Source: Scyliorhinus canicula | Taxonomy: Eukaryota | Direction: 5' to 3' | Assembly (NCBI RefSeq): GCF_902713615.1 | Contig: NW_024055487.1 | Location: 267,500 to 331,499 of the forward strand | DNA length: 64,000 bases | Shown here: positions 30,231-55,647 of the stretch, piece after piece | Position numbering within the stretch: position 1 is the stretch's first letter | Layout of the letters: each line of letters opens with the position of its first letter | The notes under the pieces: generated by a model | Seen by the model: the letters and a program-made list of their open reading frames with translations, nothing else | Told to the model about the DNA's origin: nothing | Database searches by the model: none | Position numbers and translations under genes: made by a program

Positions 30231-30239
30231 TCACTTGAT
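30231..30239 (-). CDS. IGHM: IgM heavy chain TM2 exon (IK-stop)
   Basis: Minus strand tttctgtttttacag then ATC AAG TGA; phase 0 matches the TM1 donor. Confidence 0.8.
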   Translation of the reverse strand: MK

Positions 30240-30369
30240 CTGTAAAAACAGAAAAAACAATGAAGCAGATGTTTGTGATCTGGGACATTAATATTTTATA
30301 TATGAAAAGTTCAGTGAGTTGTCAAACTGCTTCGATCAGCTAAAGTGTGAGTGGATCGAATGCTCTCAC

Positions 30370-30488
30370 CTTCACTAGGGTGACTGCAGCGCTGTAGGAC
30401 ATGCTCAGGAAGAACAGGGTGATGAATGTGGAAGCGGTTGTCAAGATGTTACCATTATCATCCTCATAGTCTTCAGTCCGGATGCTGT
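30370..30488 (-). CDS. IGHM: IgM heavy chain TM1 exon
   Basis: DSIRTEDYEDDNGNILTTASTFITLFFLSMSYSAAVTLVK; ag/gt boundaries; conserved antigen-receptor TM residues. Confidence 0.9.
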
Positions 30489-31049
30489 CTATAGAATCGA
30501 AGGGGATATAGCCGAAAATTGTTAAATTGCACTTTCATTCAGGGTATCTTTCAGAATTATATATAAATATTATCCTTTATCTTTCTGAAGTAATTTTAGT
30601 AATTTACTTTTCATTGTACATTGTTAAATTCGCGATACTCAGAAACCGATCTCTGCATCAATCTCCACAGCCGTTCGTCCTTTACGTTGCTCAAACAGTC
30701 CGTGTCACAAAACACAGCCGCTTTTGTTCAATTTCAGTTTGTTTTAGAACAATTTGGTATAATTGGAGATTATTATGATTGATACTGAGGGACGTTCATT
30801 CAGCTTCTTATTTCGACACTGTGAATGTTGCCGCTAAGAACCCGGACGTCAGTTCCCATCTTATTTGTTTATTTGCGATGGAAACATTTGTTATGTCGTT
30901 TACTGCAGCCAATTTCTCAGTCAGAACATTGTTTCAGTGCGTCGTGGGATCATTATGGAATGGGGATATGTTTTGATTGGTATGCCCATTCAAACAGTTA
31001 CATTAGAAATAAACTGTCATCTTGTTGTTTCTTTTTGTGCTTAAGTAAC

Positions 31050-31870
31050 TCGTGATTTGCCTTTATCTGTTTGTCTCTCGCAATGTGTGTTTGAACATTA
31101 ATGTGAGTGTTGATGTGCAATGTGTTTTCATCTGTGATTGCCTGTATATTTTGTGATTCTATCAATGTGTATGTACGAATGAGTTATTTTTGTCTTAAAA
31201 CCTTTGTTTATTTACGAATAGTTGTGTTAATGCGTGCTTATGTGTTCATGCCTGCTAATATATGTAGTAATATGTTTATTTGTGCGCCATCTATCTATCA
31301 ATGTGTGTATGCACATGCGTGTGCATGTGTGTCTCCGTGAGTGCATTCATGTGTATATTAACGTGTTGATAGATTTATATGCCTATGTTTGTAAATGTGT
31401 TTATGTCCCCTTGTATGCTACTATGCATTTTAGTGTTCTTGAACATAGAACATAGAGTCCCTCCAATGCAGAAAGAGGCCATTTGGTCCTTTGAGTCTGT
31501 ACCGACCCTCAGAAAGGGCACTCTACACTCTGTGTTTGTGCGTCCATATAGGCCATTAATGTGCGTGTTCATGTGTTTATACATTTGTGTTAATGTGTAT
31601 GACAGTGGACGTCATTGTGTCTGCACGAATGTATCAGACAGCGTGTGCTAATGTATATTTTCATGGTTACATCTGTGTTTCGGTCCTTTTGTGATTCTGC
31701 TTCTCTTGCAAATAATATATTTGCTTTTGCGTCTGTTCGTACGCATGTGTGAATCTGCATGATGGTTATTACTGTGTGAGCGAGCGTGTGTTTGTCTGTG
31801 TGCGTGTGTGTATTTTATGCGGGTCTGCATGTGCTCGCATACGACAAACGCACTGTGTTAGCATATGAGG
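31050..31870. repeat. GT-rich low-complexity region with a SINE tail fragment
   Basis: Direct reading. Confidence 0.8.
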
Positions 31871-32160
31871 CAGCATGGTAGCACAGTGGTTCTCAGCACC
31901 AGGGTCCCAGGTTTGATTCCCGGCTTGGGTCACTGTCTGTGCGGAGTCTGCACGTGCTCCCCATGTCTGCGTGAGTTTCCTCCGGGTGCTCCAGTTACCT
32001 CCCACATGTCTCGAAAGACGTGCTGTTCGGTGAATTGGACATTCTGAATTCTCTCTGTCTCCGCGAGCAGGCGCCGGAATGTGGCAACTAGGGGATTTTT
32101 ACAGTAACTTCATTGCAGTGTTATTGTAAGCCTACTTGTGACAAGAAAGATTATTTTTTT
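31868..32160 (+). mobile_element. HE1-like SINE with the alternative (ggcgccggaatgtggcgactagggg) tail; similar copies at about 32490-32770 and 47240-47530
   Basis: Shared head and body, tail ends gtgacaataaagattatt. Confidence 0.8.
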
Positions 32161-32883
32161 AAAACAGTAAATGGGGCATTACACGTTTGAAAAATTGTGT
32201 TGTTTGAAGGTATATTTACACCATGGTTTGTCTGATGCAAGGTTACAACCTATGACCAGTAAGTAAGAAACGACTTGCATTGTTGAAAGCTGAGTCCTTA
32301 CATTAAAGACTCACTCCCTTCCGAATTCTCCGCTCGGGGAATGGGAGGGGAGAAATATTGAAACATTGAAAACAGGTGCATGAGGCGGCCACTCAGCCCT
32401 TCGATCCTGCACCACCATTCAATATGATCATGGCTGATGATGCAAATTCAGTATCCCACACCCGCTTTCTCGCCATTATCCTTGCATGTTAGCACAGTGG
32501 TTAGCACTGTTGCTTGCAGGTTCGATTCCCGCCTTGGGCCACTGTCTGTGAGAAGTCTGCACGTTTTCCCCGTGTGTGCATGGGTTTCCTCCGGGGGCCC
32601 CAGTTTGCTCCCGCAAGTCCCGAAAGACGTGCTTGTTAGTTAATTTGGACATTCTGAATTCTCCCTCTGTGTACCCAAACAGGCGCCGGAATGTAGCGAC
32701 TAGGGGCTTTTCACATCAACTTCACTGCAGTGTTAATGTAAGCCTACTTGTGACAATAAATATCATTATTATCCCTTTAGTCGCAAGGGCCACGTCCAGC
32801 TCCCTCTTGAATATATCCAAGGAACTGGCCCCAACAGCTTTCTGTGGTAGAGAATTCCACAAGTTCAGAACTTTCTGAGAGAA

Positions 32884-33061
32884 GCTGGATTCTCTGTCGG
32901 ACGGATGCTCCGTTTTGCTGGCAGCTTGGGGGGGGGGGGGGGTTTCCCGACGGCGTAGGACAGCACCACAATGGAAAACCCCATTGACCAGCCGGCGTAA
33001 CAAAGCATCCGGCCGGCGGGATGAAACAGAAATGTGACACGGCAGGGTGGATAATCCACCA
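32884..33061. mobile_element. Short MITE-like element inside a CR1 fragment
   Basis: Ends gctggattctc...gataatccacc, similar to the termini of 6010-6724. Confidence 0.55.
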
Positions 33062-33064
33062 TTC

Positions 33065-33740
33065 TTCCTCACCTCAACCCTGAATGGCGTCCTGCTTATT
33101 CTTAGGCTGCGACCCCTATTTCTGGACGTCCCCAACATTGGGAACTTTCTTCACGCATCTAGCCAGTCCAGTCCCATCAGGATATTATATGTTTCTTTGA
33201 CATTCCCTCTCATTCTTCTAACCTCCAGCGAGTACAAACCCAGTTGATCATGTCTTTTTTCATATGTCAGTCCTCCCACCCCGGTGATTACTCTGGTGAA
33301 CCTTCGCTGGACACCGTCAGTAGCAAGAATTTCCTACCTCAAACTGGACCAAAACTGCACACAATGTTCAAGGTGTGGTTTCACCAAGTCCTGTATAACT
33401 GCAGCAATACATTCCAACTCTTATACACAAATCCTCTCGCTATGAAGGCTAGCTTGCCATTAACTTTCCTCACCTGCTGTACCCGCGCCACAATCTTAGG
33501 CGACCATTCCACCATGACACCCAGGTCTCGTTGCAATTCTACTTTTCCTAAACTGCCACAATTCAGATAATAATTTGTCTTTCTGTTTTTTCCATCAAAG
33601 CGGATAACCTCACATTTAACCACATTATATTGCATTTGCCAAGTGGTTTCTCACTCATCCAGCCTGTCCAAGTAACCATGAAGCCTCTCTTGACAGCACA
33701 CACTGCCAGCAAACTTAGTATTCTTTGCAAATCTTGAAAT
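33065..33740 (-). mobile_element. Degenerate CR1 RT fragment
   Basis: MQYNVVKCEVIRF...LAFIARGFVYKS. Confidence 0.8.
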
Positions 33741-34279
33741 ATTGCCTGCAATTCCTTCGTCAAAACAATTAATGAATATTGGGCAGTGTGGTAGCACAAG
33801 TGGATCGCACCGTGGTCCCAGGTTCGATACCCCGCGGGGTCACTGTCTGTGCAGAGTCTGCAGGTTTTCCCCATGTCTGCTTAGGTTTCCTCCGAATGCT
33901 CCGATTTCCTCCCACAGTCCAAAGGTGGATTGACCATTCTATATTGCCCTTAGTCAACAAAAAGGTTAGGAGGGATTATTAGGCTACGGGACAGGGTAGA
34001 CGTGAGGGTTTAAGTGGGTCGGTGCAGACTCGATGGGCAAAATAGTCTCCTTCTGCACTGTATGTTCTATGTATTCTGAACAGCTGGGGGTCCCAGCACT
34101 GAAACCTGCGGTAAATAACCTGTGAGTTCATTGTTTCTTTCTCCCTGCTGGGTTCAGCAGTTTCCTTTTCGATTCGCGGCTTTGAGGAGATGGCCATACA
34201 ATCAGCTGCCTAATGCACTTTCTCCTCTCTTTCTTTGTGACGTGCAGCAAAATAGTTTCAGGCTTTGCTCTTCAGTTTT

Positions 34280-35560
34280 CTCTGTTGGGGAAGTGGTGTA
34301 CGATGGATTAGCTAATACCCCTCCCCTCCCTCTGTTGGGGAAGTGGGGTACAGTGGATTAATTTATGCCCTCCCACGCTCTTTTTTGGGGAAGTGGGGAT
34401 ACAGTGGATTAACTAATGCCCCTCCACTCTCTGTATTGGTGAAGTGTGCGTATGGTAGATTAACAAATGCCCTTCCCTATCTCGTTGTTGGGGAGTGGCG
34501 GTCTAGTAGATTAACAAATTTCCCTCCGGTTCTCTTAGTTGGGGAAGTATAGTGGATTAACTATTGCCCCTCCACCTCTCTTTGTAGTGGTGTGCGGGTA
34601 CTATAGCTATAGATTAAGTAATGCCAATCCCCCTTTCTTTGTAGGGGATATGGCGGATCACTGGCTTCTCTAATGCCCCTCCCCCTCTCTATACTGGGGA
34701 GTGTGGGTCCAGTAGATTAGCAAACGCCCTCCCCCTCAATTTGTTGGGGAATTAACTACATTAAATACAGTGAATGAACTGGTGCCCCTCCTCGAGCTCT
34801 GTTGAGGAAGTTGTGGTACAGTGGTTTAAGCATTTACCCTCCAATTTGTTTGTTGTGGAAGCGGAGATACAGTGCAAAGCTAATGGCCTTCACCGATATA
34901 TTTTGTGGAAATGGAATTACAGTGAGTTAACTAAAGCCCCTCATCCTCCCTTTGTTGGGGTACAGTGGGGGTAAGTGGAATCACTAATATCCCTCGCCTC
35001 TCTATGTTGGGAAAGTGGGGTTACAGTGGATTAACTAATGCTAATCCCCAGCTCATTGCTGGTGACGTGGGGTAAAGCACAACTAAAAATGCCCCTCCCA
35101 CGCGCTTCTGGGGAAGTGGGCTATATTTGGTTAAATAATCCCCTTCCACTATCTTTTTTGGTGAAGGGGGCACAATGGATTGTCTAGTTATCCTGCCCGT
35201 CTCTGTGTCGGGGTAATGGCGGATCAATGGGTTAACTAATGGCCCTCCCCAGCTCTTTGTTGGGGAAGCGCGGGTACAGTGGATTAGCTAATGTTCCTCC
35301 TCCCTGTATTTGTTGGGTGAATGGGGGGACCGTCGATTAACTAATGCCCAACATCTTTCTTGGGGAAATGTGGTTACAATGCATAAAGTAATACCCCTCC
35401 CCATCTCTTTGTTGGGGAAGCGCAGATTTGTGAGGCAAGCGGGTTACTACGGAGTAGGTAATGTCCCTCTCCCTCTCTTTGTTGGAAAAGTGGGGAGCAG
35501 TGCATTAACAATTCCCCTTTCCCCTCTCTTTGACGGTGGATTGATGGTCCATGTTTCTGT
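34280..35560. repeat. Degenerate ~50-bp minisatellite in the CH4-TM1 intron
   Basis: Recurring ggggaagtggggtacagtggattaactaatgcccctccc about every 50 bp. Confidence 0.85.
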
Positions 35561-35594
35561 TTGATCCTCAATTCAATTCCAGTGGGTGTGATGC

Positions 35595-37076
35595 AACATA
35601 GAACATAGAACATAGAACGATACAGCGCAGTACAGGCCCTTCGGCCCTCGATGTTGCACCGACATGGAAAAAATCTAAAGGCCATCTAACCTACACTATG
35701 CCCTTATCATCCATATGCTTATCTAATAAATTTTTAAATGCCCTCAATGTTGGCGTGTTCACTACTGTTGCAGGTAGGGCATTCCACGGCCTCACCACTC
35801 TTTGCGTAAAAAACCCACCTCTGACCTCTGTCCTATATCTATTACCCCTCAATTTAAGGCTATGTCCCCTCGTGCTAGCCACCTCCATCCGTGGGAGAAG
35901 GCTCTCGCTGTCCACCCTATCTAACCCTCTGATCATTTTGTATGCCTCTATTAAGTCACCTCTTAACCTTCTTCTCTCTAATGAAAACAACCTCAAGTCC
36001 ATCAGCCTTTCCTCATAAGATTTTCCCTCCATACCAGGCAACATCCTGGTAAATCTCCTCTGCACCCGTTCCAACGCTTCCACGTCCTTCCTATAATGAG
36101 GCGACCAGAACTGTACGCAATACTCCAAATGCGGCCGTACTAGAGTTTTGTACAACTGCAACATGACCTCATGGCTCCGGAACTCAATCCCTCTACCAAT
36201 AAAGGCCAACACACCATAGGCCTTCTTCACAACCCTATCAACCTGGGTGGCAACTTTCAGGGATCTATGTACATGGACACCGAGATCCCTCTGCTCATCC
36301 ACACTACCAAGAATTTTACCATTAGCCAAATATTCCGCATTCCTGTTATTCTTTCCAAAGTGAATCACCTCACACTTCTCCACATTAAACTCCATTTGCC
36401 ACCTCTCAGCCCAGCTCTGCAGCTTATCTATGTCCCTCTGTAACCTGCAACATCCTTCCGCACTGTCTACAACTCCACCGACTTTAGTGTCGTCTGCAAA
36501 TTTACTCACCCATCCTTCTGCGCCCTCCTCTAGGTCATTTATAAAAATGACAAACAGCAACGGCCCCAGAACAGATCCTTGTGGTACGCCACTCGTAACT
36601 GAACTCCATTCTGAACATTTCCCATCAACTACCGCTCTCTGTCTTCTTTCAACTAGCCAATTTCTGATCCACATCTCTAAATCACCCTCAATCCCCAGCC
36701 TCCGTATTTTCTGCAATAGCCGACCGTGGGGAACCTTATCAAACGCTTTACTGAAATCCATATACACCACATCAACTGCTCTACCCTCGTCTACCTGTTC
36801 AGTCACCTTCTCAAAGAACTCGATAAGGTTTGTGAGGCATGACCTACCCTTCACAAAACCATGCTGACTGTCCCTAATCATATTATTCCTATCTAGATGA
36901 TTATAAATCGTATCTTTTATAATCCTCTCCAAGACTTTACCCACCACAGACGTTAGGCTCACCGGCCTATAGTTACCGGGGTTATCTCTACTCCCCTTCT
37001 TGAACAAAGGGACCACATTTGCTATCCTCCAGTCCTCTGGCACTATTCCTGTAGCCAATGATGACCTAAAAATCAA
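35595..37076 (-). mobile_element. Young 5'-truncated CR1 LINE, uninterrupted RT domain (461 aa)
   Basis: ORF 35691..37076 with QHGF, KAFDKVPH, PQGSVLGP, KFADDTK; (agaacat)n tail. Confidence 0.95.
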
Positions 37077-37814
37077 AATTTGAAACTACCATCAATTATA
37101 ACGAGATAGACAATGAGAGTAGGAGGAACACGGAAATCTAAATGTGATGTGTTTATCTGAAATGGGATTTTTAAAAAAATAAGCTTAGAACACTCAACTT
37201 TTTCCCAATTAAGGGGCAATTTAGCTTTGCAAATCCATCTATCTTGTAAACGTTGGAGTTGTGGGGGCGAAACCCACGCAGACACGGAGAGAATGTGAAA
37301 ACTCCACATGGACAGAGACGGGATTTGAAACCTGGTCTTCATCATTGCAGGCAGCAGTGCTAACCACTGCACCACTACGCCACCGTGCCACTCGCGCCTA
37401 AAATGGGAACTTGTCTGATTTCCCATCAATAAATATACTTTGCGCAATCCTGTTATGAATTAGTTTGACTCTGCCTGTACACCAGGTGATTTCTATTTTT
37501 TTCATGTACCCACTTGTTTATGTTCCAATCTACCGGCTCGTATATCTTTGGGCTGTGGGGGTGAGACCCACACAGATACGGGGAGAATGAGCAACTCGAC
37601 ATAATAGTAACCCGAGGTGGGATAGAACAGGCTCCTCGGGACCGTGAGGCAGCAGTTCTAAACATTACGCCACTGTGTCATTCCCTGCACTGAACATGGG
37701 TCCGAGATCTGTACAAATCTGAGTCTAATTGAAGATGTCTGACACCAGGAAAGCGGATGCACTATTAATAAAACGCTGTGTCGTTCAATCACATTTGGAG
37801 GGGGATCAAAAAAA

Positions 37815-37921
37815 TCTTTATTCTTTCTATTGTAGTTCGAAATATAACCAATAGTTTCTCATTTACATTAATTAACGGTGTCAATTAGAGCCAAGGGAAA
37901 CGCTTAAAAAACTCAGTTTAC
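37815..37921 (-). pseudogene. IGHM: Disrupted IgM secretory tailpiece and polyA signal
   Basis: Reads [13 protein letters not shown] (stop 37881-37883). The shifted frame gives ALIDTVN*CK*, the remnant of the usual shark tail. AATAAA on the minus strand at 37817-37822. Confidence 0.85.
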
Positions 37922-38251
37922 CGCTGGATTTATTAACCGTTCTGTTGATGATCTTCAAGGGGATGGCTTCATGTCCCACCACACAGGAGTAAGAAGCGCC
38001 GCTGGCCCACTCCTCCGCTGCAATGGATAACAGGCTGTACATGAAGAAGGAGCTATTGTCGTTCTCCGCCATCACCTCGGTGTTCTTGTAGTTCCCGGGA
38101 TTCACCGGCATGTCATTGACGGTCCACTTGACGAAGATCTCTCGGGGGGAGAAACCTCTCACTAAGCAGCTGAGGGAGACGAATCTCTGAGCGGAGACGT
38201 CTTCAGTCGGGGGCAGGAGGACAGAAACGGACGGTTCCCGCGGGTTGGGAT
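37922..38251 (-). CDS. IGHM: IgM CH4 exon
   Basis: [15 protein letters not shown]...[17 protein letters not shown]...[23 protein letters not shown]; 330 nt, phase 1/1, intact donor to TM1. Confidence 0.95.
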
Positions 38252-39109
38252 CTGCAGAAATGTACAATAAATGTTAATAAAATGGGGAATTCCGGAGACA
38301 ATGGAACCGCGGGTTAGATGTGGGAGAAATGTGTTTTGTGTTGGATTTTAAAGGTTTCCATTTCCCACTTTGGGATCTGTCCGGTTTCCCAGCTCGGAGC
38401 AGAGGTGGACACAATCCTTTTCCCTGAGAATTTACGGACTGGAACAGAAAGTTTCAGAAAGTGTATGGCATGGAAACAGGCCATTCGGACCCACTGTCCT
38501 GTGCTGATGTATCAGCTCCACACACCGGAACCCCGCCCGCCCCTACGCCACCCCCCCCCTCCCCCCGCCCCCCGCCATCGCCGCCACCACATTACTCCCA
38601 GAGGATTGTAAAACTGCCAATGGAACACCCTGATTGATTCCAAAAGGGAGTCAAGAGCATGTAACTGTAGGCCACTGACATTAACATCTGTCAGTGGCAA
38701 TCCCTTAGTGTCCATTATAACGATGTAATAGCACAGCATTTAGAAATACACAATATCATCAAATGGAGTCAGCACAGTTTCCTGACACAAAATTGGCAGA
38801 GTTGCTGATAGTGCCGAGGATGGTTTAGCACAGAGGGCTAAACAACGGGTTTATAATGCCCATCAATGCCACCGGAGCGTGTTCAATTTATTACCGGCCT
38901 CTCTGAACAGCCGCCGGAATGTGGCGACTAAGTGCTTTTCACAGTAACTTCAGTGAAGCCTACTGGCTATTATTATTATGAAGGGGAAATCATTCTCAAC
39001 AAATTGATTGCAATTAATTGAGGTGATAACAAGCAGCCTAGAGAAAGCGGAGCCAGTAGATATAATATACATTAATTTCGAAACAGCGTTTGATAAGTTA
39101 ATGTACTAT

Positions 39110-39780
39110 TGCCACGTTTGCAGGGGGTAGGTTTTCAGGACTGGAGGTAATCGATGAAGTATACGGATTGCCTAAGAGAAATGGGTTCAGATACCTGCAG
39201 GTAAGGTGGTGGTGGCGGTGGGGCGGGGGGGGGGGGGGGGTCGGGGGGTTCCGGTGGGAGGAGCGAGGTGTGGTCCTTCCCAGAGCTGCCACCTCCGGTG
39301 TTGCACGATAAGCTGCTGACTGAGGATAATATTGGAGAGGGGAGTGTCCAACATGTATGAAGAGCTGATAGACATAGAGGCCGTTCTGGAGGAGAAGATC
39401 AAGCGCAAATGGTAGGAGGGGTTGGTGAGGGGGTGCGGTCCGGGGCATGGAAGGTACCTTCAGGAGGGTGAGCGCATCCTCGTCGTGTGCAGGTTGAGCC
39501 TCATCCAATTTAAGGCGGTGCACAACCCCCACATGAGGGTCACGAGGATGAGCCGTTTTTTTGCTGCGGTGGACGAAGAATGAGTGGCCCACCTTGGCAT
39601 TTGCCTCCCTGATAGCCCGGGGACGGATTTTGCTCAGCTGGCGATTCTGACCGCTGCCATAGATGGGGATGTGGTTGAGCAAGCTGGCAGATTTCCTGCA
39701 TTTGGAGAAGATAAAGTTCGCCTTACGTGAAGCTGAACAGGGGTTCACCCGGTGTGGAAGGCATTTATTATTTCTTCATG
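39110..39780 (+). mobile_element. L1/Tx1-like ORF2 3' fragment
   Basis: Similar to the reverse complement of 25000-25790; degenerate. Confidence 0.55.
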
Positions 39781-41343
39781 GTGAATTAAAGTTTCAGCCG
39801 GAGGAGAGTTAGGGGTTGTTCTCGTTGTGCGGGGGTGGGGGTGGGGGCAAAAATTGAAGGGGCGGGTAGATTGGTGGGATGGGTGTTAGGGAATATGGTA
39901 GATCTGGGGTGTTTATTGTACCTGGGGGGAGTTTTTTCCATCTTTTAATTTCTTACAATTAAGGGCCAGTATAGCGTGGTCAACCCACCTACCCTGCAAC
40001 CTTGGGGTTGTGGGGGTGAAACTCACGCAGACGCAGGGAGAATGCGCAAAATCCACACGGACAGTGACCCGGGTCCAGGATCAAATCCAGATCCTCTACA
40101 CCATGAGAAAGCCGTGCTAACCACTGCGCCACCATGTCACCCTTGGAGTTATTTCTATCATAATGTTATTGTGATGTTTTCTATGATTTTTATATTTGTA
40201 TGCAAAACGCCCTTTACTGAAAATATTTTTTTAAATAAGGAAAGCAAGTGGCGAGAATGACACAGGTAATCTACACAGGGATAGTCAGATTAAGTGATTG
40301 GGGGGAAACTTACCAAAAGGAACATGATGTAGGAAAATGTGAGATTATACCTCCTTCGATAGGAGGAATAAAGGAGCTGAATGTTATTTAGATGGAGAAA
40401 GGCAGCAGAAAACTGTACCGAAGAAGGATTTGTCATCCTCCTGCAGACATCGCAAAAAGCTAGCATGATAGTTGTTGGGTAACAGGGAAGGTGCATTGAA
40501 TGTTGAGCTTTATTTTGAAGGGAATGCTATATAAAAATAGCGAAGTGTTGATAAAACTACACAGTGCACCAGCAAAATCACACCTGATGTTCTTTGAACA
40601 CTTTGGGAAGGATGACATATTGGTTTTCGAAGCAGTCCAGAGAATGTTCATGATGTTGATCCCGGGTATGGATTTTCTTATGAAGAGTGGCTGAGTAGAT
40701 TGGGCCTATACTCACTGGAGATTAAAAATATGAAGGCGACCTAATTGCGACATAAATCATTCTCAGACGGTTTGACAGGGTAAATGCCGAAAGGTTCCTA
40801 TCCCTTGTGGAAGATTCTTGGACCTGAGGATTTAATCTTAAATGAAGGCATCGCCATTTAAGGCAGACATGAGGAGGAATTTTTTTTCTCGGTTGGCAGC
40901 GTATCTGTGGAATTCTGTGGTGCGAAAGGTGTAGGAATTGCATCGTTCAGTGTGTTCAAGGCTGAGATAGGTGGATTTTGAATCAGTAAGGAAATAAAGG
41001 GATATGGGGTTAAGGCAGGAAAGTGGAATTGAGGATTGCCTGAGATCAGTCACGGTCTCGCTGAATGCCAGCCAGTCTCAATGGACCCAATGGCCTTGAT
41101 CTGCTCTTACATCTTCTAGTCGATGGCCTTGCTCCATCTAAACCCAATATCACCGCCTTCAATTCACTGTTCAGTCGTCTGCATATTATTTTCCACCTTA
41201 TCGTCTGCCACTCCAGATTGTTTAGTTAGTGGAATTATCAATCAAAGTAGATCAGAAATACACTGAATGCGAAATATTGACCGTTGCACTGACACTAGAA
41301 ATAGACACAATGGCTCACTTATTGCTTTAATCTCAACGCTCAC

Positions 41344-41652
41344 CTATTTTCTTATGGATCGAATTACTCAAAGGAGTTGGCAGGTCCTGATGTCTCGCCA
41401 CACAGTCAAACACAGCCCCACTTAGCCAAGCTTGTGTCGAGATGTTTAATTTGCTGACCACGCTCTCAGTATCTGCCCCAGGCTGGTCGGCAATCTCTGA
41501 TTTCAGCGGCTTCTTCGCTTCACTCCAGGACACGTTGACTCCATAAGGAGCATTCGAAATGACGCAGGTTATGGTTACAGTCGTCTCCAGTAAGACCTGT
41601 TCTATTGGTGGTGGCAGTATTGTTACTGAGGCAATAGTGCAAAGGGAAGGAT
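41344..41652 (-). CDS. IGHM: IgM CH3 exon
   Basis: [43 protein letters not shown]...[22 protein letters not shown]; 309 nt, cag/gtgag. Confidence 0.95.
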
Positions 41653-43559: not shown

Positions 43560-44450
43560 CAAATCCAAGATTCTTGGTAGTGAGGATGAGCAGAGAGATC
43601 TCTGTGTCCATGTACATAGATCCCTGAAAGTTGCCACCCAGGTTGAGAGGGTTGTTAAGAAGGCGTACCGTGTGTTAGCTTTTATTGGTAGAGGGATTGA
43701 GCTTCTGAGCCATGAGGTCACGTTGCAGTTGCAGGGGCTGTTTAGCTCACTGGGCTAATCGCTGGCTTTGAAAGCAGACCAAAGCAAGCCACAAACATGG
43801 TTCGTATTCCCATAACAGCCTCCCTGAACAGGCGCCGGAATGTGGCAACTAGGGGCTTTTCACAGTAACTTCATTTGAAGCCTACTCGTGACAGTAAGCA
43901 ATTTTCATTTTTTTCATTTCCGTTGTACATAACTCTGGTGCGGCCGCATTTGGAGTATTGCGTGCAGTTCTGGTCACCGCATTATAGTAAGGATGTGGGA
44001 TCATTGGAAAGGGTGCAGAGGAGATTTACCAGGATGTTGCCTGGTATGGAGGGAAGATCTTTTGAGGGAAAATGAGGGACTTGAGGCTGTTTTCGTTAGA
44101 GAGAAGAAGGTTAAGAGGTGACTTAATTGAGGCATACAAGATGATCAGAGGATTAGATAGGGTGGACAGTGAGAGCATTTTTCCTCGGATGGAGATGTCT
44201 AGCACGAGGGGACATAGCTTTAAATTGAGGGGAGATAGATATAGGACAGATGTCAGAGGTAGGTTCTTTACTCAGAGAGTGGTAAGTGCGTGGAATGCCC
44301 TGCCTGCAACAGTAGTGGACTCGCCAACATTAATGGCATTTAAATGGTCATTGGACAAACATATGGATGTTAAGGCAATAGCGTAGATGAGCTTTAGAGT
44401 GGTTTCACAGGTCGGTGCAACATCGAGGTCGCTGTAATGTTCTATGTTCT
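43560..44450 (+). mobile_element. CR1 3' end interrupted by a SINE (about 43735-43920)
   Basis: RT frame resumes after the insert; gttg appears on both sides of it. Confidence 0.85.
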
Positions 44451-44716
44451 AATCCGCTGTCTCAGGATAAAGCTGATATCAAGTCCACCTCACTCACTAA
44501 AGGTCTTCAAAGTAAAGGGAAGTATTCTTTGCTGTTCTGATAAAATCTTGAATGGTGAGCAAGTCCAATGCAGCTCTTACATTAGAATGAATCACAAAGT
44601 ACATGGCAGTAAATTAGAAATTGATCTGTGCTTTGCATTAACTTCAATACATTTCTGGTGTTGATTAACATCAGAGTGCAGGATGATCTATAGTTTCCCC
44701 TGTCTGTGTCTCTTAC

Positions 44717-45028
44717 CCGACGAGGCGAGGTTGAGACTTTGGGTGACCTCTTGATGAGTGACCTGGCAGGTATAGACCGCTTTGCTGAACCATTCCCCAG
44801 CGGAGACTGTCAGCCGACTGCTCGCCGAGAAGTTCCCGTTCACTTCACAGGCGGGAGAGGTGACAATTCCTGAACCCACGGATTGTCCATTCTTCAGCCA
44901 CTTCACCGTGATTGAATTTGGCTGGAAATCGATGATTGAACAGATGATGGTTGCAAATTTCTGTCTTGTGATTTCTTCATTGGGACTCACGGTGAGGAGA
45001 ACATGTGGATGGATGTCATTTCTAGGAA
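44717..45028 (-). CDS. IGHM: IgM CH2 exon
   Basis: [15 protein letters not shown]...[23 protein letters not shown]...YTCQVTH...LASS; 312 nt; acceptor is a weaker ...ccttgaag. Confidence 0.9.
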
Positions 45029-45227
45029 CTTCAAGGACCATAAGTTAGACATTATTGCAGAAGATGTTGTAACAAATAAACTGACTTATTATTTTTTCAC
45101 AGTTACTCTGCGCTCAATATTATTTTCTGGAATCCGAACTGTGTAATGTTCCATAAATGTGTCATAACCAAAGTTATAAATAAATTAATCACAGCGTTTC
45201 TGTTTTCACATGTTCGACAACACTTAC

Positions 45228-45524
45228 GCATTTCAATGCTCTTGTCTGAGCCGCTGTGTCGAACCTCACAGCTGATGTTGCTGCATCCCCCCTCTGACTC
45301 GGTGATGGTTAACTGGCTGCTCAGGGTGTAGGTTCCCTTCTTGTTTCTCACTGACGGATATTTCTTAACTCCAGTGGTGATCGGCTGCCCATCTTTCTTC
45401 CAGGAAAGGCTGGTGATTTCTGGGGAGTAGTCCATCGCCAAACAGCCGTAGGTCACGGAGCCGTCGGTGTTGTGTTGTTGACAGGAGGAGACCAGGCTGT
45501 AGAGAGTGGGCGGAGTCGGTGTCG
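45228..45524 (-). CDS. IGHM: IgM CH1 exon
   Basis: [17 protein letters not shown]...[10 protein letters not shown]...LSWKKDG...[16 protein letters not shown]; 297 nt, cag/gtaag. Confidence 0.95.
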
Positions 45525-46014
45525 CTGGGAGAGAATGGCCCATTCAACAAGTTAGACTCTATATTTGAGTTTAAGTAACCAAACATTTCAAAATGTGCCT
45601 CAAGCTATGCGTTTATGCTAACATTTCCCCATTAAAAGTTACATCGACATTTAAGCTTCTATTAGTCTCTCATTTGAGATTCATACCTCTTTGCCTCCTC
45701 ACTCGGAGCTCACATCTTACTCCTGCTCTCCCACAGGATAAAAAATGGCATTTTGGTGCCATATGAATGGGGTAACGTTTATTAAAATGAAAGAGAAGCA
45801 GGAGGTTTCCCCACTATTTCAACAATGCAAATGGTGCCGTAGTCACGGAGACTGCGCTCTCCTTTTGAGAGCTGACTAGTGGTGCTTTAACCTGAGGGTC
45901 ACTATACCTGAGGTGAGTGGCAAGGTTGAGAATGGGGCCCTTTATGAATAAGGTCAGCTGGTACAATAATCGAACCCGCGCTGTTGGGATCGTTCCTCAT
46001 CACGAATCAGCCGT

Positions 46015-46335
46015 CCAGCTAACTGAGCTGTGTACGTCACAATCCAGCTAACTGGGTTGTGTGTACGTCACAATCCAGCTGACTGGGTTGTGTGTACGTC
46101 ACAATCTAACTAACTGAGCTGTGTACATCACAATCCAGCTAACTGAGCTGTGTACGTCACAATCTAACTAACTGAGCTGTGGACGTCACAGTCCAGCTAA
46201 CCGAGCTGTGTACATCACAATCCAGCTAACCGAGCTGTGTACGTCACAATCCAGCAAACAGATGTGTACGTCACAATCCACCTAACTGAGATGTGTACGT
46301 CACAATCCAGCTAACTGAGATGTGTACTTCACAAT
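46015..46335. repeat. Eleven-copy 27-31 bp tandem repeat, AGCT-rich
   Basis: Unit ccagctaactgagctgtgtacgtcacaat. Confidence 0.95.
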
Positions 46336-46339
46336 CAGC

Positions 46340-47120
46340 AGCACTTGTGATAAAGAACGGTGTGAGGGAGTGAGATAGCGTCCGTCTGTAAGTCAGTATG
46401 CGTCTCTGGGAGAGAGAGTAGGCGTGGATCTGAGTCTGTCTGTATGTGTTTGCGTGGTCGGGAGAGTATGCATGTGAGAGAGTGTTTAATGGAACGTGTG
46501 TGTGGTAGGGAGTGTGTGAGCGAGATACTGTTTATGTGAGGGATGTTGTGTGAGAGAGACCCTTTGTGTGAGAGTGTGTCTGAGTAAGTGTGTGAGAGAG
46601 ACCGAATGTGTGTGTGATAGAGTGTGGGAGAGAGCGGGCGGATGAAAGACAGAGATAAATTGTGTGCGTTTGTCCCTGAGAGTGTGCATGTGGGAGAGAG
46701 AGCACGTGAGAGGATGTATTTTATATGAAGAGGGCATGTGCCTAGCAGAGAGTCTGTGAGAGACGGGTAGTGTGTGTGAGAGGGAGAGTGAGAGAGAAAA
46801 TGTGTCGGTAAAAAGGTGAATTTGTGAGAGTGTGTCTGTTTGTAAGAGAGTGTGAGTATGTGCGTCTGTGCTTTCTCCGTCACCATGTGAGTGTATGGGA
46901 GAACGTGATTACATGTTTGTGTTTTGAGAGAGAGTGCGTGTGAGAGACAGAAGCACAGGTGTAATTCATAGTCTGTGCGGGGGTGCGTGAGGGAGGGAAT
47001 GTCTAAGAGTGAGAATGTAACTGTGATAGGATGAGTGAGTGTGTGTAAGGGAGAATATGTCAGAGTATGAGTGTGTGTGTGTGTTTGCGGGTGAGAGAGT
47101 GTAATGTGTGTGTGTGTGTC
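46340..47120. repeat. (GT/GA)n-rich low-complexity tract
   Basis: Direct reading. Confidence 0.85.
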
Positions 47121-48399
47121 AGGATGGCTCACTCCCAGTTTCCATAGTCTCATTCACCCGCACACTCCACACATACTCGCATCCACTCTCACGGTGAGCA
47201 TAATCCGGCTTGCAGAACATGAGTTGGAGAATCATTTCGGTCTTTGGCAGCTGCGGCACGGTCGTATGGTTGCTTCACAGCTCCAGGGTCCGAGGTTCCC
47301 TGGCTTGGCTCACTGCGCGGAGTCTGCACGTTCTCTCCGTGTCTGCGTGGGTTTCCTCCGGGTGCTCCGGTTTCCTCCCACAGTCCAAAGACATGCTATG
47401 ACGTGAATTGGACATTCTGAATTTTCTCTCAGTGTACCCGAACAGGCGCCGTATTTTGGCAACCAGGGGGTTTTCACGGTAACTTCATTGCAGTTTTAAT
47501 GTAAGCCTGCTTGTGACAATAATAAAGATTATCGTTATCAAAATGTCGTCCACTGACTTATTGTTAAATAAGAAAGATTGTTAAAATGCGCGTAATTTCA
47601 CCCAGCAATGGAACAATTTATTTCCCGATATCTGATTGGATAACTCCAGCTCGTTAGTTCGATGTTCCGCCTACTTGACCTCTGCGGGGAAAGGCTCTCA
47701 TGTCAGGTACAGGCCACGTTAAGATATAGAGTAAAATTTCCACCCCATCCCACAAAAGTTCCTGTCTCTTACTGCAAGAATGGAGACACGACATTGGTTT
47801 GATACAAAATGCAACATGGACTCCCTCCAGCGCAGAAGGAGGCATTCGGCCCATTGAGCCTGCACCGACCCTCTGAGAGATCACACTACCTAGACACAAT
47901 TTCTCACCCTATCCCCGTAGCTCCACCTTGGAACAATTTAGCATGTCCAATCCAAATAGCATGCATATCTTTAGATTGTAAGAGGAAAGTGCAGCACCCG
48001 GAAGAAGCCCACACAAACACTGGAAGAATGTGCAATCTCCACCCGAGGTCTGAATCGAACACGGGTCTCTAACACTGAGGCGGCAGTACTAACCCCTGTG
48101 CCACCGCACCTCCGATCTTTAACATTATCACCTAAAGGAACGTCACCACCTACACGTCAGGTCTGTGATTGAAGATTTGGAACTTGCTGCACTGAGTGAA
48201 ATTCTAAAAAAACTCAAGAAATTCAACACGGTCGAGGACAAAGCGTCCCGCCAAATTAGCCCCCATTCACCGTCTTAAAAAATCACTCCCCCATCACCGA
48301 CAAGCAGTGGCAACTGTGTCTATGATGTACAAGATGAACTGCAGCAACTTTCCAAGACTCCATCGAAAGCACCTTCCAAATTGCAATGTCAACCACCTA

Positions 48400-48725
48400 C
48401 CGCCGAGGCAGCACGATAGAACAAGTGGATAGCATTCTGGCTTCACAGCGCCAGGGTCACAACTGGATTGCATTCTGGGTCACTGTCTGTGTGGAGTCTG
48501 CACGTTCTCTCCGTGGCTGCGTGGGTTTCGTCCGGATGCTCCTGTTTCCTCCCACAGTCCAAAGATGTGCAGGTTAGGTGGATTGGCCATGATAAATGCC
48601 CTTAGTGACGAGAAAGTTCAGGAAGGGTTATTGGGTTCCGGGGATAGGGTGGAACTGAGAGCTAAAGTGGGTCGGTGCAGACTCGATGGGCCGAATGGCC
48701 TCCTTCTGCACTGTATGTTCTATGT
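48400..48725 (+). mobile_element. HE1-like SINE; other copies or variants at about 22830-23155, 43060-43360, 47820-48110, 49200-49410, 49750-49930, 52900-53095, 54305-54500, 54690-55035, 56465-56650, 56940-57230
   Basis: Recurring head, body and tail motifs on either strand. Confidence 0.8.
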
Positions 48726-51700
48726 TGCAGAACGACAGGAACACCAGATGCACGGGAGCACCAGCAATTGGTTGTGCCCTTCCCTGCCACACACTATCCA
48801 CCCTAACTGGAAACTATACTGCCGTTCCTTCACTCTCGTTTGGTCAAAATCCTGGAACACTCTCCATCACAACACTGCGGGTGTACCTGCGCCATATGGA
48901 CTACAGTTATTCAAGAATTATTCAAGTCACCACTTTCTCAATGGGCAATTAAGCAGAGACAGCAAATGTTAGTCATACCACAGACTCTACAGTTCCTGAA
49001 TAAGATGATCATTAATATTCAGACTAATTGCCCCCTTTCCACTGCCCCAGTAAATAGGTCAAGGACTGGTGCAGCACTGAATAAAATAGAATAAAGCTCC
49101 ATCTGCATTGCGTCGTCTAACATTCCAAAGCTAGATACATCAGTGGTTAAAATGTACCCACATCTCCTCCAGTCTGTATTGAGTTTCTTCTTCTATCAAT
49201 TTAGAGTACCCAATTCTTCCTGTTTTCATGAAGGGGCAGTTTAGCGTCGCCAAACCAACTACTCTGAACAGCTTTGGGTTGTGGGGGTGAGGCACGCGCA
49301 GACATGGGGAGAATATGCAAAGTCCACACAGACAGTGACCCAGGGCTCGGATCGAATGCGGGTCCTCAGCCCTGGGAGGCGGCAGTGCTAAACACTGCAC
49401 CACCATGCCACCCTTGTCTGGTGTTGCTGAGTTGTTCATTATGACTGTCACAATCTGGGGTAAGGATCTCAGTTCAGAGGCGGCTTAACTAACATAAAGT
49501 CAAATTTTCGCAATCCTCACAGATACACGTTTTTGAAGAAATAAATCAAAGCACAGTCCCTGAAATACGAGACGATGAATTATTCACACTGCTTTATTCT
49601 AATTGATAAGTGGTCAACTTTAGACAACAACAATAACCTCTTTGAAATTAAACTGATATTTATTAAAAACTCCCTTTGCCTTGTAACTAATTCTGTCTGT
49701 CCGAACTGTGCAACATTTATATTGGCTGAAAACAATCACATCAAATATTCTTTTCCAATTAAGGGGCACTTTAACGTGTCCAATTCCCCTATCCTGCACA
49801 ATTTTGGAGCCGTGGATCTCCACCTAGACACAGGGTGCACGTGCAACTCCAAAGCGGAGCGACTCAGGGCGGAGATCGAATCGAGATTCACGGTGCTGTG
49901 AGGCAGCAATGCTGCCCACTGCACCACCATGCCATCCTGTTCCTATTGACGATAACAGATTGCATTCAGTTTAACGTCATTGATAAAGATTCGAAGATAT
50001 GAAAGAAACAAACAAAAGAGTAACCCGATTACCTGATTGACCTAATTTCTTAAGTAAATGTAACCACAAAATAATCGAGACAAAGCACATCATCGGCCTG
50101 AGCATAGAAATGTATTGCTTTCTAAATTAATTTTGGATACAATAAAAATTTCTCTAAAAGCTGAACTGTAGCATTTATGTTTGATTTGTTCGAACTGTCA
50201 TTGCATTGCACGTTGTTTTTAATTGCCAGTTAGCCTTGTTGGATGATTTGTACTCTATAATAAAAAAATGAAAAATTTATATAATTCAAAGCGAGATCTT
50301 GCCTGGAACTTTGCTTATAAATTGCGTTTAATTAAATGTCAAGCAATGCTAAACAATAAACCTCAAATAACCGGATGGAAACATTCAGACCAGGATATTT
50401 TAAATTAAATCTAATAACATTTAACATTTTACTTTTTGGTAATAATCGTCCTGTTTGAACCTGCAAAAATGTGAAATATGAATATTTCTGAACTCATGGA
50501 ATTCCATCTATTGACAGAGTCTAATTCGCACGATAAATCTATAAGCGTCTCGCTCTTTATATATACATAAATATATCTTACTTTCAGCTTGGATACATAA
50601 AGTATGTATATCTATCTATATATATATATAATGTGTGTGTGTATTTCTGACAATAATTTTGACAATCCAGACAACTGAATTATTAAAACTGCTGCTCAAT
50701 GAAAGGAGATCCAAAATTAATCTGTGTAAAACACAGTTAAAATTGTTCATTCAGATCCTCTCCAAAACTGAAACATAATAAGCAAATGGAGCAGAGATTT
50801 TGTTGTTTAATTTAATATTCAATATAAATAAGCTTGAGAATCAGATATAATCTTTTCTTTATTCTGTCATTTGTTTTTACTATAATTCTATACTGTGTAC
50901 AGCACAGTTATGCCAGACTGGCTGTTGTTAATTATTGCAAAGCTCATATTGGCATTTTCGGATTAAATTAATCTCTTTGAATTTCAAGCTGTTACTTGTC
51001 AATCTCCAGCCCTGCGCAGTCTGAACATTCCTACAATTTAAATAGAATCATTAGAAAAATGTCTTCACTGTCAGCGACTTCCAGATCACAGAAAACTGTT
51101 TATGATTAGATTAGCGACAATTATCTCACTATCCATCTACAAATGACATTGAAGGAATCATGAATCACAGTGAACAATATGGAATCATATTGTTGTGGCT
51201 GCACAGAAAGAATATAATAACCGGATACATAAATTGCCAAACTGAAATATAAAATTCCTATTTAAGTAACTGCAAACGTAATCAGGGATCTAAAAATTAA
51301 TCCAAAATCTCTTGTGCAACTGAACACCTGTGTAGAATCAGTATGTTATTGTTAAAATAGTTCCAGGCACAATTAGATTATATTTTCAGGCTAGAAAATG
51401 TTCCGGTCATGCAAATAGTGTGCAGCGTGCAGCAGAATTGTGAAAGGCGATTGCTGATTAATTATATTAATATGAAAACATCTTTGGATAATATGGGGTT
51501 ATATTACCACATTATAATAACTACTCTCCAATTTGAACAATTGTTAAATAAGAAGTATGAGCTTGCAGTAAATTGTTATGTTCTGAATGACGCAATCTTT
51601 TGGTTTAATCATCATAGAATTTACAGTGCAGAAGGAGGCCATTCGGCCCATCGAGTCTGCACCGGCTCCTGGAAAGAGCACCCTACCCAAGGTTAACACC

Positions 51701-51759
51701 TCCACCCTATCCCCATAACCCAGAAACCCCACCCAACACTAAGGGCAATTTATCATGTC

Positions 51760-52900
51760 CATAAGGTTTCCCATGGCAGGTTGATGGAAAAAGTGAAGTC
51801 GTATGGGGTTCAGGATGTACTAGCTAGATGGACAAAGAACTCGCTGGGCACCAGGAGACAGAGAGTAGTGATGGAAGGGAGTGTCTCAAAATGGAGAAGG
51901 GTGACTAGTGGTATTCCACAGGGATCCGTGCTCGGACCACTGATGTTTGTGATCTACATAAATGACCTGGAGGAAGGTATAGGTGGTCTGATTAGCAAGT
52001 TTTCAGATGATACTAATATTGGTGGAGTTGCAGATAGCGAGGAGGACTGTCAGAGAATACAACAAAATATAGATCGGAGAGTTGGGCAGAGAAATGGCAG
52101 ATGGAGTTCATCCAGGCAAATGCGAGGTGATGCATTTTGGAAGATCAAATTCAAGAGCGGACTATATGATCAATGGAAGGGTCTTGGGGAAAATTGATGT
52201 GCAGAGAGATCTGGGAGTTCAGGTCCATTGTACCCTGAAGGTGGCAACGCAGGTTGATAGAGTGGTCAAAAAGGCATACAGCATGCTTGCCTTCATCGGA
52301 CGGGGTATTGAGTACAAGAGTTGGCAGGTCATGTTACAGTTGTATAGGACTTTGGTTCGGCCACGTTTGGAATACTGCGTGCAGTTCTGGTCGCCACATT
52401 ACCAGAAGGATGTGGATGCCTTGGAAAGGGTGCAGAGGAGGTTCACCAGGATGTTGCCTGGTATGGAGGGTGCTAGCTATGAAGAAAGGTTGAGTAGATT
52501 AGGATTGTTTTCGTTGGAAAGATGGAGGTTGAGGGGGGACCTGATTGAGGTCTACAAAATTATGAGAGGTATGGACAGGGTGGATAGCAACAAGCTTTTC
52601 CCAAGAGTGGGGGTGTCAGTTACAAGGGGTCACGATTTCAAGGTGAGAGGGGGAAAGTTTAAGGGAGATGTGCGTGGAAAGTTTTTTACGCAGAGGGTGG
52701 TGGGTGCCTGGAACACTTTACCAGCGGAGGTGGTAGAGGCGGGTACGATAGCATCATTTAAGAAGCATCTAGACAGTTATATGAATGGGCGGGAACAGAG
52801 GGAAGTAGGCCTTGGAAAATAGGAGACAGGTTTAGATAAAGGATCTGGATCGGCGCAGGCTGGGAGGGCCGAAGGGCCTGTACCTGTGCTGTAATTTTCT
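51760..52900 (+). mobile_element. CR1 RT 3' part
   Basis: ORFs 51781..52197 and 52082..52822. Confidence 0.9.
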
Positions 52901-55115
52901 TTGTTCTTTGTTCTTTGTTCTAATCCACGTAACCTGCACATCTTTGGACTTGCAGAGGAAACTGGAGCACCCGGAGGAAACCCACGCACACACGGGGAGG
53001 ATGTGCAGACTCCGCACAGTCAGTGACCCAAACCGGAATCGAATCTGGGACCCTGGAGCTGTGAAGCGATTGTGCTATCCACAATGCTACCGTGTAATCA
53101 TCAGTTAATAAAATACTAATATACCTTTATTCCATTCTGAATTTCCAACGCCTGCTTGTTTTCTACCTGTAATCGTGTTTCAAGCAGATTTAAACACGTA
53201 GACCGTTGGCATTTAACCACAAATCATGTAACCGCTTAATATCACTGAGTATAAACAATGCAGAGACTCCAAACCTCTTCACAAATTGTACTTAATCAAA
53301 GTCACCCAGACACACATTATCCTCAGCAGTTAAACATCAAACTCATCATCGAGGAGTCGAACCCCGTTTCATGGAGAAGCAGGTCAATTCTACATTGAAC
53401 AGAATAAAACTTAACATTTCAAAAACATCTCAACATCGAGTCCAGCTCGCCACCAAATGTATCAATTTTCAAACTAAATAAAAATCTGTAATAACAGCAA
53501 TATAATTGTGAGGAGCTGCAATGTGTCCAAAACAAATATTGAAAGTTTACCGCGTTTTATTCATATTGGACCATATTTTAAACATATTTAAACACTTAAT
53601 ATTTGCAGTAGCTGTAACCATCAATCTCACCTAGACGAAACATTGCAGAAGCCACAGGCTGCGATTGCAGTAATAATTTATGTTCAGAAAGAACGCCTTG
53701 AACCCTGCCTTAGTTTAATGTCCAAACTGCTCTAAAATCCTGCTTTTTTTCTGCCGACAATCATGCATCAAGCAACTTCAAACATTCCATTCAAAAACAT
53801 GGAACTGCTCAATGTCACCGAGTTTGAACAATGCAGAAACAATGCAGAAACGGCAAACCGTTTCAAACATCTTATTTATTCAAAGTCACCCAGATACAAT
53901 CTATTCGTCAGAAAACCACCAAATCACATCACCAAAGGCCTGGGACTCGTTTCATGGAGAAGCAGCTCAATTCAAAACACTTCCAACAAAATCAAACATA
54001 ACGTTTTAAGAAATTATCAATCCAGAAGCCACCAAATCCACCTGTCATCAAATGAATGAATAATTAAACAGAAACTTAGAAGAATATCATCAGCATTGTG
54101 AATACGCAGAACATGTTCAATAAAGTAACACATAAACCTCAGCATATTTTGTTGGGTTCGATTTCTAACACTTGTGCAGGAGGTGGTAAAACTTGCAGCC
54201 ACCAGATGTCACCGAGATTAAACATTGCAGAAACGCTGCGTTGGGTATTTAAAATAACCCGGCCACACAGTACCCTCAGCAAATAAACACTAAATCACAG
54301 CAACCGGGGGCAGCACGGTGGCGCAGTGGTCAGCCCTGTTGCCTCACAGTGCCGAGGTCCTAGGTTCGATCCCGGCTCTGGGTGATCGTCCGCGTGGAGC
54401 TTGCACATTCTCCCCATGTTTGCGTGGGTTTCACCCCCAGAACCCAAAGATGTGCACATAGGTGGATTGGTCATACTGAATTGCCCCTTAATTGGAAATA
54501 AATGAATTGGATACTCTAAAACATTTTTTTAAAATCACAACAACCATGGACTGAATCCCTGAGCAGCGACTTTTGTCAAGAGGCAGAGTAATTCTATAAC
54601 CTTTTTCATCAGAATCGCATGAAACATTGCGACAAAATCCCAATACAGAATCACCAAACCCACGATTCAGTGAACGAATTAATTGTTTTTTTAAATTTAG
54701 AGTACCCAATTGTTTTTCCAAACAAGCAGCATTTTACTATGGCCAATCCATTTAGCCTGCACATCGTTTGGTTGTGGGACTGAGACCCACGCAGACACGG
54801 CGAGAATGTGTAAACTCTTGCGTGGGTTTCGCCCCCACAACACAACCATATGCACACTGGGTGGATTGGCCACGCTAAATTGCCCCTTAATTGGAAAAAA
54901 TCAATTGGGTACTCTAAATTTACTTTTAAAAAAGAGAATGTGTAAACTCCACACAGACAGTGACCTGGGGCGGGGTTTCAATCTCGGACATCTGCGCCCT
55001 GAGATATCCGCTAACAACTGCGCAACCGTGTTGCCCTGAATAAATTGTGAATATACAAAAAAGTACAAAACTACGACTGAAATAAAACAGTTGGAAATAA
55101 TTGACTGGTGCTTAC

Positions 55116-55475
55116 CTGCAGGCACCGTCACCATGGTCCCCTGTCCCCAGTAGTCCATCCCACCCACTATGTCCACTGTACAATAATAGATGGCGGTATC
55201 TTCGGCCTTCAGGTTCGTCATGGCCAAAGATAAGATATTGTTCGAAGTGTCTGTGGAAGCAGTGAATCGATCTTGAATTCCTGCGGCGTAGCCATTGCTG
55301 GAAGAAGTGTCGTACCAAAGCAGCCACTCCAGCCCCTGTCCGGGAACCTGTCGGATCCAATGCATGGTGTCGCTGCCAAGGCTGAAGCCGCTGGTTTTAC
55401 ACGTCAGTGTCAGGGAGCCTCCGGGACGCCCGGTCTCTGCCTCTGGCTGAGTCAACACAACATCCGACTGGACAC
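55116..55475 (-). CDS. IGHM: Joined, in-frame VH-D-JH exon of IgM
   Basis: [25 protein letters not shown]...[16 protein letters not shown]...[29 protein letters not shown]; 360 nt, acceptor tacag, donor gtaag; no RSS or intervening DNA between V and J. Confidence 0.95.
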
Positions 55476-55601
55476 CTGTAAAAATATATCAAAAAGCCCG
55501 AGGATTAATGCTGGTGAAATGATTGGTGACTCTGGAACATTCCATAGAGACTAACACTGAGACAGTAACAGTGAGAGACTTGGACAATAAAAACTACTCA
55601 C

Positions 55602-55647
55602 GGGATAAGAAAGTCAGCAACAAACTGAGAGAAATGGCCCACCTCAT
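55602..55647 (-). CDS. IGHM: IgM VH leader exon
   Basis: MRWAISLSLLLTFLS plus C, donor gtgagt; phase 1 joins in frame to the V exon. Confidence 0.92.

Follow-up and report, generated by a model that had tools for sequence, protein, structure and literature searches.

Germline-joined VDJ immunoglobulin heavy-chain (IgH) miniclusters have been described in cartilaginous fish, in the horned shark (Kokubu et al., 1988) and in the clearnose skate. In the nurse shark, the gene IgM1gj encodes a mu-type chain whose VDJ is joined in the germline and from which, as the gene is described, CH2 is absent; it is reported as a single, highly expressed neonatal gene whose product occurs in serum as monomers and dimers, not pentamers (Rumfelt et al., 2001). 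The NS4 light-chain genes are attributed to recent RAG-like joining in germ cells, with the regulatory motifs of split genes kept and with some joined genes in frame and some out of frame, and a receptor freed from RAG has already been proposed for joined genes (Lee et al., 2000, PMC2193156). Such antibody genes are of interest both as a sign of RAG action in shark germ cells and as candidate hard-wired receptors. They have been known since the 1980s, and the gene described here, from Scyliorhinus canicula, is a further member of this class.

The gene lies on the minus strand of the window, the whole stretch of 64,000 nucleotides that was analyzed. Its eight exons (46+360+297+312+309+330+119+9 nt) sum to 1782 nt and encode 593 amino acids followed by a stop codon, with AG...GT at every exon boundary of the membrane IgM chain. 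The exon sizes, sum, reading frame and GT-AG boundaries in the first-pass annotation of this DNA were all reproduced. The features are, in order of transcription:

55739-55746, minus strand: TATA-like box TATTTAAA, within a ∼250-nt block of promoter, 5′UTR and leader
55602-55647, minus strand: leader exon, 46 nt, with ATG at 55647 and donor GTGAGT
55116-55475, minus strand: fused VDJ exon, 360 nt (Pfam V-set, 1.2e-18), with J donor GTAAGC and a 10-residue CDR3
45228-45524, minus strand: CH1 exon, 297 nt (Pfam C1-set, 7e-15)
44717-45028, minus strand: CH2 exon, 312 nt (Pfam C1-set, 6e-20)
41344-41652, minus strand: CH3 exon, 309 nt (Pfam C1-set, 2e-9)
37922-38251, minus strand: CH4 exon to the internal membrane-form donor G/GTAAAC, 330 nt (Pfam C1-set, 1.3e-21)
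37881-37921, minus strand: degenerate secretory tailpiece, 13 residues then stop, identical in all six copies of the gene family described below
37817-37822, minus strand: AATAAA, 3′ of the secretory stop, a putative signal read from the sequence
30370-30488, minus strand: TM1 exon, 119 nt, carrying the transmembrane motif of antigen receptors, TTASTFITLFFLSMSYSAAVTLVK
30231-30239, minus strand: TM2 exon, 9 nt, ATCAAGTGA (I, K, stop)

Four C1-set constant domains together with mu-type TM exons identify the product as an IgM heavy chain, and its CH4 shows 92% identity to over 100 conventional CH4 exons in the same genome. The four CH domains and the capacity to encode a membrane mu chain, both claimed previously, are confirmed by the exons, the open reading frame and the Pfam matches. 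Since the leader intron (126 nt) and the J-C intron (9591 nt) are both kept, a retrocopy can be ruled out, as had been argued: along with these introns the locus has a promoter and C exons of its own, the layout of a minicluster. The promoter/5′UTR/leader block shares >97% identity with its counterparts in other IgM clusters, both conventional and joined, and there is no perfect octamer within 1 kb of it.

The most striking feature of the gene is its fused VDJ exon. The earlier observation that V runs straight into J without a recombination signal sequence holds, with V, D and J contiguous in one exon. Compared with the unjoined clusters of the genome, V homology ends at exon position 299 and J homology starts at 318–321, the J match running from ATGGACTAC onward; between them lies a D1 footprint, ATAGTGGGT, which matches D1 at eight of nine positions. 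The junction therefore derives from the cluster's own D and J elements, at a divergence (∼10%) that blurs any N or P nucleotides. Conventional clusters of the same genome are organized as V/CACAGCG-23-nonamer, D1, D2 and J over about 1.2 kb, and their V genes are 88–90% identical to the joined V; V-D-D-J, VD-D-J and VDJ cluster forms are all present.

Six paralogous clusters in the genome start with this VDJ and share its CDR3; all six have the full eight-exon layout, including a CH2 exon with good splice sites, and a common tail. The 119-amino-acid VDJ is identical at four of these sites, and in the two remaining, near-identical copies it is damaged. Four copies are open; the broken ones have three stops in one case and a 4-nt insertion in the other. 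There is also a seventh CH4 fragment. Intron divergence among the copies is 1.2–2.7%, with differing large insertions and with kilobase indels private to individual copies, and two of them lie 128 kb apart on the contig that carries the gene studied here; these are therefore paralogs, and a reading as haplotigs is ruled out. The IgM cluster adjoins TCR-type and NAR-type V segments, and in three copies a TCR-type V lies 11.5–12.6 kb beyond TM2. Because six diverged paralogs share one junction and CDR3, the support for a V-D-J joint in inherited DNA, as first proposed, is strong, albeit indirect; with one joint inherited by six paralogs, the genome itself supplies a clean proof that the joint is germline.

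The gene had also been called intact. This is true of the membrane form but not of the secreted form, because the tailpiece shared by the family is degenerate. From chimaera to sharks, the conserved canonical tail reads GKPSFVN(I/V)SLALMDTVNSCQ, with an NxS glycan site and a penultimate Cys. In the family tail the NxS site is gone, one extra base causes a frameshift, and a TAA stands before the polymerizing Cys codon. Tail mutants of the mammalian mu chain offer an analogy for a secreted chain that stays monomeric.

We tested the proposal that an intact frame among decayed neighbors hints at selection by comparing the six copies. Variable columns make up 4.09% of exons and 4.86% of introns, and the coding sequence has acquired 66 singletons since duplication, against 71.7 expected under neutrality. 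These coding changes divide into 18 synonymous, 45 replacement and 3 stop (neutral expectation 27/69/3.9%), and the open copies alone show 10 synonymous to 30 replacement changes. Exon indels number 1 against 3.95 expected, a shortfall that is not significant (P=0.095). Selection since duplication is thus undetectable among the six copies in either the number of substitutions or their synonymous, replacement and stop proportions, and the proposal is unsupported: two of six copies are broken, and the coding changes fit the neutral expectation. The locus is a worked example of how an open reading frame alone would over-suggest selection.

Considered together, these data make it probable that the gene is one copy of a six-member germline-joined IgM family that has drifted neutrally since its amplification. 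The exon was made by a single V-D-J joining, presumably of RAG type, in line with what has been proposed for genes of this kind. This joining is older than the duplication of the cluster and lies in inherited DNA, because the six clusters have one junction and one CDR3 in common. The secretory tailpiece had also decayed before amplification. Segmental duplication then multiplied the unit, at least three copies being carried along with the neighboring TCR-type V segment, after which the copies changed like neutral DNA, leaving four open and two broken. The present copy probably stayed intact through youth and a slow mutation rate, or through redundancy, and its intactness is no demonstration of selection. 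An open copy whose promoter is indistinguishable from conventional ones could yield, with no need of RAG, a membrane mu chain whose VH is fixed; it could also yield a secreted chain without the tail Cys and glycan, monomeric by analogy.

A RAG-independent fixed receptor is possible, and a further reading holds that such a receptor is maintained: membrane IgM of fixed specificity, or secreted IgM that is obligately monomeric, serving early life or innate-like B cells, under family-level selection masked by redundancy. Six-fold redundancy could indeed hide selection acting on the family as a whole. In favor of this reading, the promoter is intact, four of the six clusters remain open, and the ancestor was open at duplication, though its tail had long decayed. 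The VDJ exon has no replacement changes in the four open copies and 3–4 in each broken copy, a pattern that points toward some constraint on V, in numbers too small for a statistical test. On the branch that separates the family from other VH genes, the V exon has 8 synonymous to 8 replacement changes; the resulting omega of about 0.3 shows what appears to be past constraint on the V exon, along a branch that is unpolarised. Polarization of these changes by other joined V genes fails, because they may not be true outgroups. Precedents exist in IgM1gj, with its monomers and dimers, and in the early-life expression of joined genes. Against a maintained receptor, the coding changes since duplication are neutral in number and kind, the open copies included; two copies are broken, and there is the seventh CH4 fragment; and joined heavy-chain genes of the horned shark were not found to be expressed (Lee et al., 2000, PMC2193156). 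We therefore regard maintenance as rather unlikely. More doubtful still is an extended form, in which the six copies form an IgM lineage of their own that abandoned polymeric secretion, providing an invariant membrane receptor or obligately monomeric antibody without RAG as an innate-like B-cell receptor that parallels IgM1gj yet is independent of it, and travelling with TCR-type V segments in a TCR alpha/delta neighborhood.

The k-mer shares of sequencing runs were dropped as a measure of transcription because they are not specific to the family: 41% of the leader and VDJ 31-mers are shared with conventional clusters, the shared words stemming from FR1, the leader and the leader intron. Small contig sets, presumed to be RNA, contained 0.14–0.42 of the leader and VDJ words and hardly any from the upstream flank, a pattern that resembles transcription but is discounted for this reason. 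When the VDJ and CH4 exons were searched against proteins, within a length window that excluded full-length chains, no near-identical protein was returned, a result that bears on neither annotation nor expression.

The fused VDJ might instead have a non-coding role, as a gene-conversion donor or another substrate for DNA-level exchange in the Ig/TCR region. Its setting among TCR-type V segments fits such a role, and the fused VD donors of the chicken, discussed by Lee et al. (2000, PMC2193156), provide a parallel; yet the promoter, leader, splice sites and C exons are all complete and the conventional V genes are merely 88–90% identical to the joined V, so that we consider this very improbable. 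A somatic rearrangement caught in the assembly, or an assembly artifact, is effectively refuted by a junction shared among six diverged paralogs, each with its own later mutations and insertions, two of them 128 kb apart on one contig.

As a germline-joined family, probably drifting neutrally, the six clusters resemble the joined IgH miniclusters of other cartilaginous fish in their fused V-D-J in inherited DNA, their retained leader and J-C introns, and their coexistence with split and partly joined clusters. They differ in that one joint is found in six paralogous clusters and the secretory tailpiece is degenerate. The NS4 genes, in contrast, are light-chain genes with a VJ joint, for which a TCR-locus context is not described. 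Linkage has been published at chromosome scale, whereas here the cluster and a TCR-type V segment are co-duplicated on unplaced contigs. IgM1gj also has a joined VDJ on a mu chain, and loss of the tail Cys would predict a non-pentameric form here too. Judged by the published description of IgM1gj, the present gene differs in its four CH exons and six copies, and the presence of CH2 argues that it is not an IgM1gj ortholog. Only if the family is expressed would its shared loss of the polymerizing tail bear on the balance between monomeric and pentameric IgM in sharks.

The window carries an eight-exon IgM heavy-chain gene on the minus strand, whose exons were read around each proposed boundary and then joined by script:

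55602–55647, minus, leader exon (46 nt)
55116–55475, minus, VDJ exon (360 nt; V-set, Pfam)
45228–45524, minus, CH1 exon (297 nt; C1-set, Pfam)
44717–45028, minus, CH2 exon (312 nt; C1-set, Pfam)
41344–41652, minus, CH3 exon (309 nt; C1-set, Pfam)
37922–38251, minus, CH4 exon, up to the internal donor G/GTAAAC (330 nt; C1-set, Pfam)
30370–30488, minus, TM1 exon (119 nt)
30231–30239, minus, TM2 exon (9 nt)

These sum to 1782 nt, encoding 593 amino acids and a stop, with GT...AG at every intron and the antigen-receptor motif kept in the TM exons. The exon lengths, overall span, and open frame of the first-pass annotation were reproduced exactly on re-reading and assembly. Leader and VDJ exons are 126 nt apart, and the J-C intron spans 9591 nt. 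The intron between CH4 and TM1 contains a retroelement with a 461-aa open reverse-transcriptase ORF (window 35691–37076, minus), oriented like the IgM gene itself.

In the conventional IgM clusters of this genome, where V, D1, D2, and J are unjoined, V ends with TGTGCAAGAGAC, after which come CACAGCG, 23 nt of spacer, and a nonamer; D1 (ACTACAGTGGGT, heptamers on both sides), D2 (ATAACTGGGG), and J (e.g., ACGCCATGGACTACTGGGG...) lie ∼1.2 kb past V. The fused exon comprises V homology up to position 299, then GTGGAC-ATAGTGGGT-GGG, then J homology from ATGGACTAC on. Its D1 footprint retains 8 of 9 bases, with a second, partial D1-like run, ACAGTGG, upstream. Because the V exon is only 88–90% identical to conventional V genes, N/P additions at the joint are not resolvable. 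In a six-frame VDJ search of the genome, V matches ran through J in ∼15 of 150 cases. Three other VDJ-joined genes (loci L009/L013, L012, and L026) have different CDR3s, and a VD-joined cluster (L022, G000:C623:36829–40128) retains the D1 3′ RSS. The genome is a classical mixture of joined, partly joined, and split configurations.

The same six-frame search placed the 119-aa VDJ, 100% identical, at four sites: on contigs C84 and C99 and twice on C95, one of these being the window copy and the other C95A. These four copies are open, with GTCAGC as the J donor in the C84 copy. Two further sites, on C92 and C90, are 96–97% identical and carry lesions: the former has three stop codons, and the latter has 4 nt duplicated within its VDJ exon plus an altered internal CH4 donor. 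Comparison of 30 kb per copy revealed one and the same eight-exon layout, CDR3, and short secretory tail in all six. Haplotigs are ruled out by divergence of 1.2–2.7% between copies (∼21.6 kb aligned intron), by private insertions/deletions of up to 1.5 kb, and by the presence of two copies 128 kb apart on one contig. A somatic joint, in turn, is incompatible with one junction and CDR3 common to six diverged paralogues; joining therefore occurred in the germ line, once, before the duplications, which bears out the first-pass proposal of a germline joint. The family arose by a single V-D-J joining followed by duplication of the joined cluster. We also note a partial CH4 with the family's truncated tail (G000:C84:141766–142050; 94% identical over residues 28–122), 42 kb from the C84 cluster, which looks like the remnant of a seventh copy.

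The intactness of the window gene had been taken as a hint of selection. This is unsupported, as coding changes since duplication fit neutrality in number and kind. Variable columns make up 4.09% of exons versus 4.86% of introns, and the CDS holds 66 singleton changes versus 71.7 predicted from the intron singleton spectrum. These are 18 synonymous, 45 replacement, and 3 stop, versus a neutral expectation of 27%, 69%, and 3.9%; in the open copies only, synonymous to replacement changes stand at 10:30, with the same expected proportions. Pairwise pN/pS over the whole CDS is 0.30–0.91 (neutrality = 1), and there is one small exon indel versus 3.95 expected (P = 0.095, low-complexity contexts excluded). 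No purifying selection since duplication is detectable in the family, and the open frame of the window copy is unremarkable at this divergence. Two weak signals stand against neutrality. Changes in the VDJ exon are synonymous only in the four open copies, with 3–4 replacements in each of the two broken copies, and the branch between the family and the remaining VH genes, which could not be polarised, carries 8 synonymous and 8 replacement changes (omega ∼0.3). Six-fold redundancy could relax single copies while the family stays useful.

The secreted form, omitted from the first-pass annotation, ends at a stop at 37881 with a 13-letter tail, and AATAAA is still present downstream. Relative to the canonical tail, GKPSFVN(I/V)SLALMDTVNSCQ, kept from Callorhinchus to sharks, the NxS sequon is gone, one added base causes a frameshift, and the old frame has TAA in place of the codon before Cys. 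These lesions are common to all six copies, so tail decay predates the duplications. The tail Cys of mammalian mu chains drives polymerisation; by analogy, the family's secreted product would be monomeric.

Because ∼250 nt spanning the TATTTAAATGCC box, 5′UTR, and leader are >97% identical to conventional clusters, we infer that the family would be transcribed where those clusters are. Word shares in sequencing runs, suggestive at first of family transcription, were rejected: the queried sequence has 41% of its 31-mers in common with conventional clusters, so ordinary IgM transcripts could explain these shares. Of 10 clusters inspected, 9 had no perfect octamer (ATGCAAAT) in the 1 kb upstream. 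Across all IgM clusters, proximal promoter, 5′UTR, and leader are >97% identical, with V exons 10–12% apart (window 55650–55900; loci L007–L030 from the same genome, positions ∼1080–1500).

On the strand opposite the IgM gene lies a TCR-delta-like V (window 17332–17619, plus), followed by heptamers, in which both canonical cysteines are replaced (LNWEY, YYAAL); it has 17 genome copies at 75–100% identity, 15 of them without stops. Three of the six IgM copies have this TCR-type V at a distance of 11.5–12.6 kb past TM2, and the duplicated unit therefore includes both it and the IgM cluster. A NAR-like V (…RFVVSVNKAENTFSLEIRDVRVEDSATYFCKA…; window 12400–12700, plus), also opposite in strand, ends at a CACAGTG heptamer (RSS) and has a frameshift between its halves. 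Best protein matches were to Scyliorhinus torazame. VH-like V groups between the two C95 IgM copies (G000:C95:231326–236367) and at C108:126221–128885 have only 49–55% identity to IgM VH; TCR delta may use them as Ig-like V segments. In catshark and other elasmobranchs, IgH clusters are described as linked to TCR alpha/delta (PMC12227049).

Knowledge of joined IgH clusters goes back to Kokubu (1988), and Lee (2000) has both germ-cell joining of a RAG-like type and the idea of a receptor no longer dependent on RAG. The nurse-shark germline-joined IgM, IgM1gj, is the expressed example; it has no CH2 and occurs as monomers and dimers. By its defining features the window gene is a germline-joined IgH cluster, a new member of this already known kind, but it is not an IgM1gj, which is defined by the lack of CH2, because CH2 is present. 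What sets the family apart is one joint amplified six-fold, together with a polymerising tail lost in common.
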